Below, piece by piece: positions 27,889-64,000 of a DNA stretch of 64,000 nucleotides (position 1 is its first letter; each line of letters begins with the position of its first letter). Source of the stretch: Hyaloraphidium curvatum SAG 235-1 (lineage: Eukaryota; Fungi; Monoblepharomycota); contig JAIVFI010000007.1 in the NCBI GenBank assembly GCA_025558095.1, forward strand, positions 1 to 64,000, read 5' to 3'. The position numbers and the translations under genes were made by a program. The notes under the pieces were generated by a model, which saw only the letters and a list, made by a program, of their open reading frames with translations, made no database searches and had not been told where the DNA came from.

Positions 27889-29792
27889 TCATACAGCCAA
27901 AGCGCTGTCCTTCCGGTCGATGACCGCCTTCAGCTCGTCCGCAACCTGCCCGAACGTGGGCCTCTTGCCTGGGTCGGAATCCCAGCACCGCCTCATCAGG
28001 CCCCACAGCGCCTCGGGGCACCGCTCTGGCCGCTCTGGCCGGAAATGTGGGTCCGTCCTGATCCGCTCCCCGAGCATCTGCGGCGACAGACCCTCGTCGA
28101 GCATCTCCATTTCCAAGGGGGTTTCGCCCTCGGAGAGGAACTCCCACATCGTCATGCCGAAGGCGTAGACGTCCGAGGGCCGGCCGCGGCGTCCTTCCCA
28201 CACTAGAATCGCCGTTGAGAATCGCGATACGAAGGGACAGCCGCGTGATGCCCACCTTCAGGCGCCATGTAAGATGGTGTGCCCCCCACGAACATGGTCT
28301 GCCTCGTCGACCCCGACCGGATCTTGCTCAGCCCGAAATCGGCGACCTTGGCCACCCCGTTCTCGTCCACCAGCACGTTGGCGCCCTTGAGGTCCGAGTG
28401 CAGGATCGGCATCGGCCTCGAATGCAGGTGGTTCATCCCCTTGGCGATCTGGAACAGCACGTCGGCGACGGTGGCGGGGTCCCAGCGCTTTGTGGTGAGG
28501 TAATCGGTGGCGGTGCCGTTGGCCATGAAGCGCGTGACCATGCAGAAGGGCTCCTTGCACCAGCCGATGAGGGGTTGGACTGCCGATCGCTCGTCAGCGA
28601 CAGCGGGTGAGGCAAGGCGGAACAAGCGCACCGTTGTCGTGGTAGGGCAGAGCTCCCCACACCGTCATCTCCTGCTCGAAATCCGCCCTCTTCCTTTCCA
28701 GCAGCCGCGGCGTCCCCGCCATCTTGACGAGCTTCATCGCGACGCGGGTGTGCTTCTGGTACAGCCCCTCGAACACCTCGCCGAACGCGCCGGAGCCGAG
28801 GTACTTGCCCCTCTCCAGATCGGCGGGGAGGATCTCGTACGCCCCGTGGGGAGACAGCCCTCCTGGGGTGCCCGGCGAAGGCGGTGGAGCCGTTCGGATG
28901 TTGAGCTCGGCGAGCTCCTTCTCGAGCTTCAGCCTCTCGGCGAGCAGCGCGAGTTCCTTGGCCTTGGCCTCGTGCTCGAGCTCCGTCCGCCGGCGCTGCA
29001 GCTCGAGCTTCTCGCGCTCGTGCGCGAGGTCTTCATCCCGGCGGCGGCGCGCTTCGGCTTCCGCCTCTTGCTTCCGACGCGCCTCGGCCGCCATCCGGTT
29101 CCGCTCGGCCGCCTCGGCTTCCTCCCGCTGCTTTCGCGCCGCGGCTTCCGCCTCCGCACGCCGACGCTGCAGCTCGAGCTTCTCCCGCTCGTGCGCCAGC
29201 TCCTCCTCCCGGCGGCGCCGGGCCTCGGCTTCCGCTTCCTGCTTCCGGCGGGCTTCAGCAGCCACGCGGATGCGCTCGGCTGCGGCGGCCTCGCCGTTCG
29301 CTGCATCAATGGCTGATTGCGCCCTCTTGATGCCGACCATCGCATCCTGGTCACCGCCGGCCGATGCCTTCCGGTACAATTCCAGCGCCGTGGATAGATC
29401 CTTGGGAACGCCTTTGCCGTACTCGTACATGTAGCCGAGGTTGAACTGCCCGTACGCGTTGCCCTGGTCGGCCGCCTTGCGGTACCACCGCACGGCCTCG
29501 GCATGGTCCTGGGCCACACCCTGTCCGTTCTCGTAGCAGAGTCCGAGGTTGAACTGCGCGTTCGCGAGTCCCTGGTCGGCTGCCTTGCGGTACCACCGCG
29601 CGGCCTCGGCATGGTCCTGGGCCACCCCCTGTCCGTTCGCGTAGAGGAGTCCGAGATTGAGCTGCGCGTCCGCGAGTCCCTGGTCAGCCGCCTTCCGGTA
29701 CCAACGCGCGGCCTCGGCGAGGTCCTCGGCCACGCCCTGTCCGTTCTCGTAGAGGAGTGCGACGCTAAACTGCCCGCCCGCGTGTCCCTGTT
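27889..29792 (-). CDS. Sel1-repeat (4) + duplicated coiled coil + TKL-type non-RD protein kinase; 5'-truncated, possible pseudogene
   Basis: GSGAFGEV, VAMK, HSDLKGANVL, DFGLS, GTPSYMAPE, SDVYAFG, CWDSDPGKRPTF; two introns. No ATG precedes the first repeat (the ORF-track start is GTG in intergenic-derived DNA). Confidence 0.85.
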
Positions 29793-59001: not shown

Positions 59002-62000
59002 CTACAGCATGTCCTCGATCGCGTCCCGCGCCGCATCCATCGTCGGCCTCTTGTCGGCTTCGGCCTGCCAGCACGCCTGCATCAGCGCCCACAGCGCATC
59101 CGGCGTGCCCTCGGGCCTGTCGGGCCTCTTGTTCTCCACCGCGACCTGTAACCACTCAAGCCATCAGCGGCCGGGATCCCCAGCCGGCGCTTTCCAACCC
59201 ACCTGAAAAACCAGCGCCACGACGTTCTTGATGTCCTGGAATGGGTAGAGCCCCCTGCTCGCCACCTCGTAGCACACCATTCCGAATGCGTACACGTCCG
59301 CCGGGGCGCGCAGGGACCGCCCGTTCATCAGCTCAGGCGCGACAAACCCCGGCGTGCCAAACAGCCCCCCCGCATGGGTCATGCTGGCCACGGTGTTGGT
59401 CTGCTCGCGCACGCGGGAGAGGCCAAAGTCGGTGATGAGCGCCTTGCCACCGTCCACGAGCACGTTGAGCGATTTGAGATCGCCGTGGAGCACGTGGACC
59501 GAGTGCAGGTAGGTCATGCCGCTGGCGACCTCTGCGAGCAGCTTCAGGCCAAGGGGCAGATCCCACGCCCGTCGATCAAGATATTGCCGCATGTTCCCGC
59601 CGTCGGCGATCTCGCTGACCATCATCGGCGGCTCGACGCAGTAGGCCATCAGGGGCATCACTTTCCGGCGTCACCGTCAGCATCCACTTGGGTCATACCC
59701 CGTGCGACCCACCGTTCCTCTGCACCAACCCCTCCCAATTCCTCACCTCCCTCGCGAACGCCGCCGCCGACGCCGCATCCGCCCCCTTCATCGTCTTGAC
59801 CGCCACCCTCACCTTGCCCCTCAGCCGCCCCTGGTACACCGTGCCGAAGGTGCCCTCCCCGAGCGGCTTGGCGTAGTCGATCTCGATGTCCGAGGCGGGG
59901 ACGAGCAGGCGGCTCTGCTGCACGGGGGTGTTGGGGGAAGGAGGCCGGTTCGAGCCGGTGGAGGCGGGGATGACGGCGATCTGGGGGCCGCCTGCGGGTT
60001 CGGGGGTGCGAGCCGGAGCCGCGGCGGCGGCCGATCCCGAGGCGGAACCGGATGTGGATGCTGGGCGCGCAGGAGACTGATCGGAAGCTGATCCCTGGCT
60101 TGCTGGGCCTGCGTCCTTTGGTGCGGCTTCGAGGGCCGCGGGGGCGGCGACCGCGGATTCGATCCTCGGAGTCCAGGCAACTCCGGCGTCCGCACTTGCC
60201 GAAGATATCTTGCCCCATACTTCCTCGGTGACAGCAGGAACAGAGGAACCAGCGGGTGCGAGGCCCGATGCGGCCGGGACCGGCGGGGGCTCGCGGCCCG
60301 CAATCTCTGTGACGGCGGGCACCGACGGCACCGAACCTTGGGCAGAAGCATCGGCGGGCTGAGAGGCTGCCGCTCCCACCGCGGCAATTGCAGCTGCGGC
60401 AGGGACTCCGGGTCGCAAGGCAGGAGCAGAGGCTTGCACAGGAGCCGAGGTCACCGACGCCTCGAGCGCCACGTCGTCCGTGGCAGCGCGCACCGACAAT
60501 ACCGGTGCCTGCAATGCGGTCGGCGTTCCTTGCACCGGAGCATCCTCTGTGACGGCGGGCACCGACGATCCTGCCGGCGGTTTGCCGGCCGCTTGCACCT
60601 CTTCCGTGACCAGGGGCACCGAAGACCCTGCACCTGACGACGCGACCGCGGTGCTCGACCCCTCCGATGCCCCGATCGACGCGGCAGCGATACCCGCCGC
60701 CGCCGCAGCGCCCCAAACAGCCGTCCCCTCGGTACCCCTGTGCGACGCTTCGGTGGGCACCGGCACGCTGCCCACCGATCCCTCGAACGCCGTGCTCGAG
60801 CCCGCTTCCGAGATCGGGGCGGCGAAGGAGGGCATGACCTGCGTGGCGGAGTCGGCAGGAACGGCTGATTTGGGCGAGACCAGGCCGGCGGTTGGGATGA
60901 CAGCAGCGGCGGCGAGGATGGGGGCGGCGGGCGGCAGGGCTGCAGGTTGGGGTGCAGGCAGAGGGGGTGGCGCAGCGTCCGCGAGGTTCTTGGCCGCGCC
61001 GTTCGGTGCGACAGCTGCTTCGGCGAGTCCGTTGCCTGCCGGCGGCGGCGGCCCGCCTCCGTTGTACTTGGCACCGAACGCATCAGACCCATCACCAGGC
61101 TTGGCCCCTGTCACCCCGCCCTTCTCCGCAGCCGCAACAGGTGCCTTTCCCGCATTCTTTCGCCGCGTGTAGACGACGGCGCCGCCGATTCCCGCGACGG
61201 CAGCCAGGCCTCCGACGACGCCGCCGACGATCGCGCCGATCGGCGCGCCGCCGCCGTCTCCGGAGGAGCCGGTGCCGGTGGAAGTGGGAGAGGGGGCGAC
61301 AGCGGCGAGGGTGGTTGATGTGGTTGAAGGGGAGGCCGAGGGGGTGGGGGAAGGCGAGGGGGAGGTGGCGGCGGTCGTCGCGGGGGCGGCGGAAGTCGTG
61401 CGCGAGTTGGTCGTTGTGGTCTTTACCGTCGTCGTGGTAGTCGTAGTGGTCGTTGTAGTCGTTGTAGCAGGCGCCACGGGTCCGACCTGCGCCGGCACGT
61501 TGAGCTGCCCCGCCCCGTTGACCCCCCACCCCCGCACGGACCCATCCGACAGCCTCGCAAGGGAAAACGTCTCCCCCGCCGCCAGCTGCACCACGTTCCT
61601 CAGGTCCGAAGGCACGTTGCATGCGGCGGACTGCCCCCAGCAAACCACGGTGCCGTCCTGCCGGAGGGCGAGGGAGTGGTAGTACCCCGCCGCGACCTGG
61701 CGGATCCCCGAGAGTCCGGAGGGCACATTGATCTGTCCAAAATCGTTGCCACCCCACGCCTGGACGGTTCCATCAAGGAGGAGTGCCACGGTGTGAGACC
61801 AGCCACAGGAGACCGAGGCGACACCGCCGGCCCGCAGGGCGGCTGGGATCGCGAGCTTGTTGTTGGAGGTATCGCCCTCACCCCGGAGGCCGCCATCGTT
61901 CCGGACCGCGATCACAAAGGCGCCGCCGGCCGAGATGGAACTGCAGGGGCCGGTTTCCCGGATGAAGGTTTCCAGCGGCGGCACGGTGCTAAAGTCGACC

Positions 62001-62524
62001 AGTGTGCCGTCGTTCTGCACGCCCCAGTTGAAGTCGATCCCAGCGGAGACGCTGCGCATGTTAACGGCATTGGAAGGAACAACGAGAGCTCTGTTGTCGG
62101 AGCAGCAGCCCCACGTCTGGGTGGTGCCTGGCACGGGATCAAAGTCAGCCTCAGCTTCTCAGGCCATGGCAGACCCACCGTCCGACAGGCGGGCGATTCC
62201 GTGAGCGGTCCCGAGGGACACCTGCGTCACGCTCGTTCTGAAGCCCGGCAGGCTCGTCTGCCCGCGGTCGCTCGCACCCCACGCGGCGACGCTGCCGTCC
62301 GAGAGCACCGCCGCGGCAAAGTTCTGCCCGCACGCGATGTTGGTCGCCGGCAGCGCCGCCGCGGTGCCAACAAAGGCAGCGGCGCCGATCAAGAAAGGGA
62401 TCAGCCCCGCGGAGGCGACGCCGCGTCCGCATCGTGCCGGACTTTGTCCGGCGCGAGGGACGGCCGCGCGGCACTCATTCCCTCCGCGCGGCGCCCGCCC
62501 GCCCGGCTTCGCGCGCCCGTCCAT
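59002..62524 (-). CDS. Single-pass receptor-like TKL kinase with seven RCC1/BLIP-II repeats
   Basis: Hydrophobic signal; 7 x ~38-aa repeats (VAAGYYHSLALRQDGTVVCWG type); poly-Thr stalk; TM IGAIVGGVVGGLAAVAGIGGAVVY-TRRK; GEGTFGTV, VAVK, HGDLKSLN, DFG, APE, DVYAFG, CW..RPTM; 3 introns. Confidence 0.9.
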
Positions 62525-62908
62525 GGCGGCAGGTAGAAGCTTGATGGATCTCTTCGAGCCCCCTCGGAGGGACGGGCGAGGGAACGGCCGGTGCGGGGGT
62601 CCGGCGCTCCCCTGAATCGGGGCTTCGACTCGCGCAAAGTGGCTGGGGAGAAGTGTCATAGTTCGCGGTCCCATGCGCGCGGAACTGCCGTCCCCGCAGC
62701 AAAAGACCAATCGACGGGTGCGATCAGCCGGCGGCCCGTTTCTGCGGGCGGCCTGGCGTCTGCTGCCCGGCCAGCCGGCGCAGCGCTGCGATGAAGCACG
62801 TGCCAACAGGCCGACTCCGCATCCCAGCTCCTCCGGACCACACGGCCATCCCGAAGCAACCTCCCGCCTCCGTCCCGCGCAGATGTCGCGCCCTTTCCCT
62901 CCCCCATC

Positions 62909-64000
62909 TCATCCCTCCTTCATCCCCATGCTGCTCCCAACTCCCGGCCCCGGCTTGGGCGGCCACGCCTCCCCGTACAACCGCCTGAACCTGATCGCCA
63001 GCGCCGCCTCCCTCCCGTACAGCAGCACGCTCCTCGCATTGATCCACGCCAGCCCGTCGCACTTCCCGAACGGGTGCGGCCGCCGCGCGCCGTAGCCCCC
63101 GTATGCCGGCGCCTGCGCGAGCATCGAGGCGTTGCCGCAGCGGGTGCCCCACCGCCTTTCCGGATCGCGGGGGTCCGCGGTCCACCCCGGCGCAATGCTG
63201 GGGCATGCCCGTCCGAGGTTGGCCCACGCCATGGAGTTCTCGTAGACCCCGGCGAAGATGTAGTCCGGCCCCGTGCGGGCGTCCAGGCAGTCCGCGGGCC
63301 TGAAGTCCGGCAGGGAAGAGACCCACGCTTCGGCCCAGTACCTGCCGAGGCCGACGTAGCTCTCCAGGCATTTGTCGACGCCGTGCTCCCGCGCCGCGGC
63401 CCCGTAGGCCGCCAGCCTCGCGGGGTCGCGCATCATGCGGGGGTCCACGAGGCGCGCAACGTGGTCGCACCGCGCCCAGAAGAAGTTGCCCGTAAAGTGC
63501 GGGTACGGCACCGCCGAGAACCTCAGGCTGCACACGTCGTATTCCTCCATCAGGGTCGCGCAGCGCGGCGTGAGCACCGCGCAGTCCAGCGCCTTCCGGA
63601 AGCGCCCGTTGATCGGGCTGGGGTTCGCCGAGCCCTTGTTGTGCCAGTACAGGACGGCGGCCTCGGGGTCGGCGCGGCAGAAATCCCAGAGGTCGCCGAG
63701 GGTCTCGAGCTCGTCCCCCGCGGGGAGGTGCTTCATCCGCCGGGCCTTGGGCGCCCCCGGGAGCACGATCTCGGCCCCGTCCGGACCAAAGGTGTTGTAA
63801 AACACGCGCTCCAGCATGCTCCACGTGCCCGACGCGTTGAGCACGGCCAGCTGGTCCGCGATGATCTCGGCGTACGGCGCGCGGGTCCGGTCGGCAAATA
63901 TGTTGTAGAAGCCGTACAGCTTCCGCGTCCGCGGGGGCTCCGTCGGCGCCGCGGAAGGGCCCGGAGAGGGGCCGCCCGTCTCGCCCAACGAGGATGGGCG
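62909..64000 (-). CDS. Uncharacterised glycosyltransferase-like protein, 5' end outside window
   Basis: ELETL..LWDFC..VLYWHNKGS..HFTGNFFWA..RYWAEAWV; the ORF runs to the window edge. Confidence 0.5.
   Translation of the reverse strand, partial: RPSSLGETGGPSPGPSAAPTEPPRTRKLYGFYNIFADRTRAPYAEIIADQLAVLNASGTWSMLERVFYNTFGPDGAEIVLPGAPKARRMKHLPAGDELETLGDLWDFCRADPEAAVLYWHNKGSANPSPINGRFRKALDCAVLTPRCATLMEEYDVCSLRFSAVPYPHFTGNFFWARCDHVARLVDPRMMRDPARLAAYGAAAREHGVDKCLESYVGLGRYWAEAWVSSLPDFRPADCLDARTGPDYIFAGVYENSMAWANLGRACPSIAPGWTADPRDPERRWGTRCGNASMLAQAPAYGGYGARRPHPFGKCDGLAWINARSVLLYGREAALAIRFRRLYGEAWPPKPGPGVGSSMGMKEG

Follow-up and report, generated by a model that had tools for sequence, protein, structure and literature searches.

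We found that the minus strand at 59002-62524, within the 64,000-nt window analysed here (positions 1 to 64,000 of contig JAIVFI010000007.1 of the fungus Hyaloraphidium curvatum SAG 235-1), carries a four-exon gene, referred to below as the C7 gene, which probably encodes a type-I, single-pass, receptor-like Ser/Thr kinase. The gene is expressed and spliced as modelled and belongs to a lineage-restricted family, and its product consists, in order, of a hydrophobic N-terminal segment, seven RCC1-type repeats with the fold of a seven-blade propeller, a Thr/Ser-rich stalk, a glycine-zipper transmembrane helix, a long Ala/Pro-rich linker and a kinase domain with intact catalytic motifs; the receptor arrangement and mode of action that we propose below are predictions from this sequence. 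A sequence-only reading of the window had described a signal-like segment, seven repeats, a Thr stalk, a Gly-rich helix with basic residues, a linker of ~400 amino acids (aa) and an intact HGDLK kinase, and each of these lies where that reading had placed it; its description of the product as a fungal, single-pass, receptor-like kinase likewise finds support in domain order and hydropathy.

The gene model agrees with transcript data and with a second organism. One public RNA run contains 93% of the words sampled from 59002-62524, and the run's contigs differ from the DNA only by the exact removal of three introns (CT..AC on the plus strand), which indicates that the run is cDNA-derived and that the gene is transcribed and spliced as modelled; splicing had been anticipated at 62.13-62.18, 59.66-59.71 and 59.15-59.2 kb, and all three introns are indeed skipped in RNA contigs. 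Each intron is of the GT..AG type, opens with GTGGGT, and a branch site, CTGAC or CTGAT, lies 15-25 nt ahead of the AG; G+C content is ~0.65-0.72 across the gene, and the TAG stop codon occupies 59004-59002. Exon 2 is a single open frame of 2415 nt (805 codons), and because it encodes everything from repeat 3 to the kinase N-lobe, stalk, membrane helix and linker included, the union of these parts is not a fusion artefact. Independent support comes from an ortholog, P0125, encoded on a 5-kb Logan contig (L075, 56% G+C, run SRR26194948), whose parts follow in the same order. It aligns collinearly with all four exons (48% identity in the ectodomain and 68-73% in the kinase) and reads through all three exon junctions without an intron, its own single intron sitting elsewhere.

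Positions of the features of the C7 gene within the window
Feature	Position	Strand	Remarks
Whole coding region	59002..62524	-	four exons, 1120 codons including stop, 3363 nt
Exon 1	62179..62524	-	start codon, Arg-rich N-region, hydrophobic signal, repeat 1, first part of repeat 2
Intron 1	62128..62178	-	51 nt, phase 1, within repeat 2; GTGGGT...CTGAC...CAG; absent from RNA contig 4
Exon 2	59713..62127	-	rest of repeat 2 to repeat 7, stalk, transmembrane helix, linker, kinase N-lobe
Intron 2	59661..59712	-	52 nt, phase 1; absent from RNA contig 1
Exon 3	59203..59660	-	HGDLKSLN, DFG, GTPGFVAPE, DVYAFG
Intron 3	59146..59202	-	57 nt, phase 0; absent from RNA contig 1
Exon 4	59002..59145	-	kinase C-terminal helix region
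Hydrophobic signal or signal-anchor core	62351..62410	-	residues 39-58, then A|LPA; Kyte-Doolittle maximum 1.97
Seven RCC1-type repeats, propeller ectodomain	61472..62338	-	contains intron 1; repeat register, RCC1_2, BLIP-II match, AlphaFold2, Foldseek
Thr/Ser-rich stalk	61244..61471	-	76 aa, run of 13 Thr; T 39%, S 17%, A 14%, P 12%
Glycine-zipper transmembrane helix with basic stop-transfer TRRK	61157..61243	-	Kyte-Doolittle maximum 2.03
Cytoplasmic Ala/Pro-rich low-complexity linker	59915..61156	-	~411 aa; A 26%, P 14%, S 12%, G 10%
Span of five S[VI]PxxTE motifs	60224..60769	-	starts 60769, 60622, 60565, 60325, 60244 (regex)
Protein kinase domain	59005..59914	-	across exons 2-4, holds introns 2 and 3; Pfam PK_Tyr_Ser-Thr on each exon
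Catalytic loop HGDLKSLN	59464..59487	-	non-RD, Ser/Thr type; HGD at 59487-59479

Searches and structure predictions were run exon by exon or with stored proteins, and the fold given here for a whole ectodomain is that of ortholog P0125. The repeat units of the C7 ectodomain measure 39, 40, 38, 41, 39, 37 and ~38 aa, repeats 3 and 4 being degenerate and lacking WG. Pfam RCC1_2 (PF13540; curated cut-off 22 bits) matches exon 2 at 105.4 bits and exon 1 at 36.9 bits (E 3e-9). When the exon-2 ectodomain was compared with solved proteins, BLIP-II of Streptomyces was the best match (E 2e-39), followed at lower ranks by UVR8 (1e-28), HERC1 (1e-18), yeast RCC1 (1e-14) and ACR4 (8e-6). The AlphaFold2 model of the complete P0125 ectodomain, built with 60 sequences (predicted local distance difference test [pLDDT] 92.2; predicted template-modelling score 0.91), has 21 strands in seven groups of three, and Foldseek again ranked BLIP-II first (1JTD; template-modelling [TM] score 0.79/0.81, 31% identity), with ACR4 (7A0J) at TM 0.69/0.71 and 18% identity. 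For the exon-2 part of the C7 ectodomain itself, the model (pLDDT 92.5) has five complete three-strand blades, with BLIP-II once more at rank 1 (TM 0.86/0.69). Sequence and modelled fold together support a complete seven-blade propeller whose nearest solved relative is bacterial BLIP-II, as the sequence-only reading had suggested. Just seven Cys occur in the whole C7 ectodomain, and CWG is found only in repeat 6; in P0125, repeats 3 and 4 are likewise degenerate and the cysteines of WGCC and CWG..C recur, so that these Cys pairs are kept between the two proteins. Across 61481-62125, the ectodomain shares 33-41% identity with bacterial propellers, against 28-35% with paralogs in its own genome and 48% with the ortholog, a pattern that would fit either an ectodomain of bacterial origin or one drawn strongly towards the consensus of the repeats. 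A word search with the ectodomain was dominated by bacterial multi-propeller proteins, with no kinase in its top 120, and is uninformative on eukaryotic relatives.

Type-I topology is predicted from hydropathy (two hydrophobic segments) and charge (TRRK), which agree with each other. The A-LPA junction that follows the first hydrophobic core is present in P0125 as well. Scanning the stalk sequence revealed no Cys, no N-glycosylation sequons and no Pfam match. The transmembrane helix begins with PIGAIVGG and contains three overlapping GxxxG motifs, and the tail beyond the membrane comprises ~680 aa, kinase included. Within this tail the linker has no Pfam match; its S[VI]PxxTE motif occurs five times in the C7 gene, once each in paralogs C37 and C40, and not at all in P0125.

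The kinase is intact by its motifs, and we predict that it is a catalytically complete, TKL-like, non-RD enzyme of the Ser/Thr type, with HGD where RD kinases have HRD: exon 2 carries the Gly-loop GEGTFG, VAVK and the alpha-C Glu (EVRNW), and HGDLKSLN, DFG, APE and DVYAFG are likewise all present, in agreement with the earlier description of the kinase as intact and non-RD. Tyrosine kinases typically have the catalytic loop HRDLAARN or HRDLRAAN and the P+1 loop PxxWxAPE. A tyrosine kinase was suggested by the best solved matches (Src, Abl and Lck; E 2e-33), but was rejected because the loops HGDLKSLN and GTPGFVAPE are of the Ser/Thr type. In a word search, the nearest named kinases outside Hyaloraphidium were Agaricomycete TKLs (31-38% identity, one labelled TKL-ccin), and FERONIA was a weak match (E 2.7e-16, 31% identity). 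A HMMER search of 1.84 billion representatives found close single-domain relatives at roughly 42-64% identity; among 20 of these that were looked up, every named one was from H. curvatum and the others were from Logan assemblies. In a quick maximum-likelihood tree of 106 rows, which represents the C7 gene by exon 3 only and holds no curated receptor-like kinase (RLK)/Pelle set, all Hyaloraphidium and Logan-assembly kinases form one clade with no others inside it (Shimodaira-Hasegawa-like approximate likelihood ratio test [SH-aLRT] 97), the sister of which is composed of the sampled Agaricomycete TKLs and one Polychytrium kinase (SH-aLRT 97). Inside the clade, the C7 kinase groups with paralog C37 and ortholog P0125 (SH-aLRT 97). 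The word search returned no public protein model of the C7 gene, even though the kinase core of this gene is 79% identical to that of the query's locus; either the annotation lacks the gene or it was modelled outside 442-1405 aa.

From these parts one could envision the following mechanism. The N-terminal signal would place the BLIP-II-type seven-blade propeller outside the cell, where the Thr/Ser-rich stalk, probably O-glycosylated, would hold it away from the membrane and where it would bind a putative extracellular ligand. Ligand binding may then alter the association of receptor chains, the GxxxGxxxG helix favouring contact between them, and the cytoplasmic kinases would in turn phosphorylate each other, the linker, or downstream substrates. 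The long, presumably disordered Ala/Pro linker bears SVPxVTE-like motifs that are candidate phosphorylation or docking sites and appear to have been amplified in the C7 paralog.

Several observations weigh against this account of the protein. No single RNA contig bridges ectodomain and kinase; instead, RNA contig 1 (58900-61387) and RNA contig 4 (61364-62511) meet in a 24-nt overlap (61364-61387) that lies in the run of poly-Thr codons, where short-word assemblies break. RNA depth falls upstream of 62511, so that transcription start and thereby start codon are provisional: exon 1 as modelled has a sole in-frame ATG, at 62524, and two further in-frame ATGs at ~62660-62675 are relevant only if transcription begins further upstream, where a third contig, less deeply covered, extends over 62482-62700 and on into the upstream gene. 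The Arg-rich stretch ahead of the hydrophobic core is unusually long for a signal (38 aa from the first in-frame ATG), and a spacing of 411 aa between membrane and kinase is unusual among receptor kinases.

The C7 gene is one of many related genes in the H. curvatum genome, in which exon 3 (kinase) has at least 161 matches at E <= 1e-10, the ectodomain 40 and the transmembrane module 32. The sequence-only reading had called for a census of related architectures, and this yielded 12 loci at which RCC1 repeats are followed by a kinase on the same strand (C7 itself, C37, C38 twice, C21, C3, C15, C36, C40, C2, C26 and C43), most of them with the same transmembrane module, which was matched between RCC1 repeats and kinase at 9 of the 12 and gave no match at C38b, C2 and C26. 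Five loci (C37, C38a, C40, C2 and C26) hold RCC1 repeats and kinase within single open reading frames (ORFs) of 698-1005 aa. Of the 28 nearest paralogs, 13 encode a helix of the P-x-[VI]-G-A-I-V-G-G type, with Arg/Lys after it, in frame and immediately before the kinase, and the ectodomains borne by transmembrane-kinase paralogs include RCC1 repeats, STIG1-like Cys repeats, Cys-containing segments without a Pfam match, and very short Ser/Thr-rich segments. The latter are found in paralogs L011, L013 and L014, with 58-76 aa upstream of the transmembrane-kinase module (25-39% S+T). Between C7 and C37, identity is 35% in the ectodomain and 78-79% in the kinase; such lower conservation of the ectodomain than of the kinase would be expected under rapid evolution of ligand specificity. 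The tree does not support the idea that the RCC1 ectodomain arose only once in the kinase clade, since well-supported branches force at least four changes; some of its ectodomain labels "other", however, rest on truncated public models (P0127, for instance, is the C15 RCC1 gene).

Other members of the genome show further combinations of these parts. P0122, on C3, has a kinase of the same clade and the glycine-zipper helix, but its ectodomain consists of six STIG1-like cysteine repeats, which suggests that ectodomains have been shuffled while the transmembrane-kinase module stayed fixed. Also on C3, an open frame of 1003 aa (L073:1077-4085; C3:123078-126086, plus strand) has at least seven RCC1_2 repeats and a C-terminal SH3 domain, so that RCC1 propellers are here joined to an output domain other than a kinase. 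On C31, an open frame of 801 aa (L074:7175-9577, minus strand) has at least eight RCC1_2 repeats interrupted by EGF_3 domains; the frame itself is without a kinase, and one lies ~5 kb downstream. The kinase core of the C3 RCC1 receptor kinase (L065, C3:166727-167200) is nearly identical to those of two leucine-rich-repeat (LRR) kinase proteins from another contig, of 909,727 bases, P0134 and P0135 (branch length 0.047, with the L065 row partial at 47% of columns filled), a likeness that may reflect a recent event of exchange or duplication by which genes with different N-terminal domains came to share their kinase part.

The family also extends beyond H. curvatum. Run SRR26194948, the source of P0125, contains another gene with RCC1 repeats, transmembrane helix and kinase, P0355, which lies on a 49.7-kb contig where its neighbours are ordinary eukaryotic genes. 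The diflavin reductase encoded on that contig is 47% identical to that of H. curvatum and 32% to those of the next named fungi, which makes the organism a fairly distant relative of H. curvatum. A third source, Logan run SRR23967301 (L076, 57% G+C), contains a close kinase relative, P0124 (826 aa), with a hydrophobic run, a weak SH3_9 match and no RCC1.

We lean somewhat towards a broader view, in which a diversified repertoire of single-pass receptor kinases arose in Hyaloraphidium and its relatives independently of those of plants and animals. The common module would be the glycine-zipper helix with its non-RD TKL kinase, and the interchangeable ectodomains would comprise propellers of the BLIP-II kind, which may have come from bacteria, Cys repeats like those of STIG1, and other Cys-containing domains that have no Pfam match.

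In outline, the predicted architecture of the C7 product parallels that of plant CRINKLY4/ACR4, in which a signal, seven repeats of ~39 aa forming a compact extracellular seven-blade propeller and one transmembrane helix likewise precede a C-terminal Ser/Thr kinase. For the ACR4 propeller, too, BLIP-II is the top structural neighbour (bioRxiv 10.1101/2020.08.10.245050), and features of the CR4 family include repeats that carry a C(X~10)CWG motif (PMC4617170) and invariant blade disulfides (bioRxiv 10.1101/2020.08.10.245050). However, neither the per-repeat motif nor the blade Cys pairs are found in the Hyaloraphidium receptor, a Cys-free Thr/Ser stalk stands in place of the TNFR-like Cys-rich domain, a 411-aa linker is present, and the ectodomain similarity to ACR4 reported above is weak by E value, identity and TM score alike. 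The kinase, moreover, lies beside the sampled Agaricomycete TKLs, in a tree without a plant RLK/Pelle kinase. These differences favour the sequence-only reading's proposal of independent assembly, here in relation to plant CRINKLY4.

BLIP-II (beta-lactamase inhibitory protein II) of Streptomyces exfoliatus (1JTD, 3QHY, 3QI0), the best solved match of the ectodomain in both sequence and fold (TM 0.79-0.86, 28-36% identity), likewise has seven blades of ~40 aa with three strands each, but is a soluble, secreted bacterial protein without a stalk, membrane anchor or kinase. Kinase and RCC1 repeats are joined in one chain in bacterial Hanks-type kinases with RCC1_2 and in animal Nek8/Nek9. Nek8/Nek9 have the kinase at the N-terminal end and a cytosolic RCC1 domain, and the usual order in bacterial Hanks-type receptor kinases is kinase, transmembrane helix, sensor; in contrast, the Hyaloraphidium propeller is N-terminal and predicted to be extracellular. 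Clusters in the ESM Atlas that combine Pkinase with RCC1 or RCC1_2, found by a search on features without alignments, included one from Bacillota and some of Nek8. As for the kinase, the Agaricomycete TKLs (TKL-ccin) are its nearest named counterparts outside Hyaloraphidium, form the sister clade and have also undergone lineage-specific expansion, but the matches among those listed carry no RCC1 in precomputed Pfam lists. The FslK lineage is one such lineage-specific expansion, with 6 of its 241 members in Chytridiomycota, and transmembrane regions go unmentioned in the paper that describes it (Zhao et al. 2014, PMC3937382; 0 occurrences).

One could alternatively regard the protein as a sensor of cell-wall or surface stress, with the rigid, O-glycosylated stalk acting as a spring, the propeller anchored in the wall, and a built-in kinase where yeast Wsc1/Mid2 have a Rom2-binding tail. 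Like those sensors, which also have a Ser/Thr-rich and probably O-glycosylated stalk directly outside a single transmembrane helix, the C7 product has 76 aa of stalk (56% Thr plus Ser) immediately before its only such helix, and L011, L013 and L014 combine the transmembrane-kinase module with a short Ser/Thr-rich ectodomain and nothing else. However, we consider this account unlikely: Pfam detected no WSC domain in the receptor, its tail is a long one with a kinase rather than a short signalling tail, and the propeller is a protein-binding type of fold. The wide variation of paralog ectodomains (RCC1, STIG1-like, Cys-containing without a Pfam match) resembles ligand diversification, and the far greater divergence of ectodomain than of kinase between C7 and C37 also argues against a wall sensor.

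It is quite improbable that the protein acts in pattern recognition, as a sensor of bacteria or other microbes whose non-RD kinase would be a hallmark of innate immunity, a role that the sequence-only reading had raised as possible. The titles of its PDB entries state that BLIP-II, the nearest solved relative of the ectodomain, binds a bacterial enzyme at picomolar affinity; the family is expanded and its ectodomains are diverse; and PMC8463890 links plant non-RD kinases to immune receptor kinases. However, HGD is present in 27 of the 31 catalytic-loop motifs read at 30 paralog loci, including ankyrin-kinase and LRR-kinase members without a detected hydrophobic run, and its occurrence in receptor-like and ankyrin/LRR members alike indicates family inheritance that is not tied to a receptor role. 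The step from a non-RD kinase to pattern recognition thus fails, and microbe sensing by this protein is pure speculation. Scarcely credible is a misreading of a neighbouring secreted RCC1 gene and a cytosolic kinase gene as one, since the lack of a single RNA contig across the poly-Thr region, which would favour it, is countered by the exact 24-nt overlap of two contigs at an assembly-breaking low-complexity repeat, by an uninterrupted exon that runs from repeat 3 to the kinase Gly-loop and Lys, and by the recurrence of the same order in single ORFs of five paralogs and in two genes of another organism.

Receptor kinases of this kind are generally considered absent from fungi, which are usually described as sensing their environment through G-protein-coupled receptors, histidine kinases and wall sensors. 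No LRR receptor kinases were found in 49 fungal genomes surveyed in 2010 (PMC2939053). The contrast that the sequence-only reading drew with Dikarya is beside the point, as NCBI places H. curvatum in Monoblepharomycota, Hyaloraphidiomycetes. Our literature searches for fungal receptor kinases of the RCC1 type, or for kinases of Hyaloraphidium, found no paper. The closest paralogs in public databases are H. curvatum proteins with accessions of the KAI90... series, and public records name the paralogs only "kinase-like domain-containing protein". The findings concern an expressed receptor-like kinase family in an early-diverging freshwater fungus, conserved in at least one relative, and, if our reading is true, receptor-kinase signalling would have had a further independent origin inside fungi. 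In this family a fungal TKL kinase is combined with a propeller that most resembles those of bacteria. Plant CRINKLY4, in which the same outer fold is joined to different parts, makes a natural comparison, and the family is also a test case for ectodomain shuffling; its propellers may have new binding specificities.

Of the neighbouring genes, the one upstream (62909-63988, minus strand) is an open frame of 359 aa without a Pfam match. The lower-depth RNA contig joins it to the start of the receptor gene across 62700-62482, which suggests that the 3' end of the upstream gene and the 5' end of the receptor gene may overlap. The downstream neighbour has a weak match to a fungal transcription factor. 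Elsewhere in the window, a kinase-like fragment (28254-28574, minus strand) has an equal-scoring twin at C54:6359-6679, and other paralog loci also occur in identical pairs (C30/C48, C1/C52 and C10/C51); these twin loci are either recent segmental duplicates or uncollapsed haplotigs.

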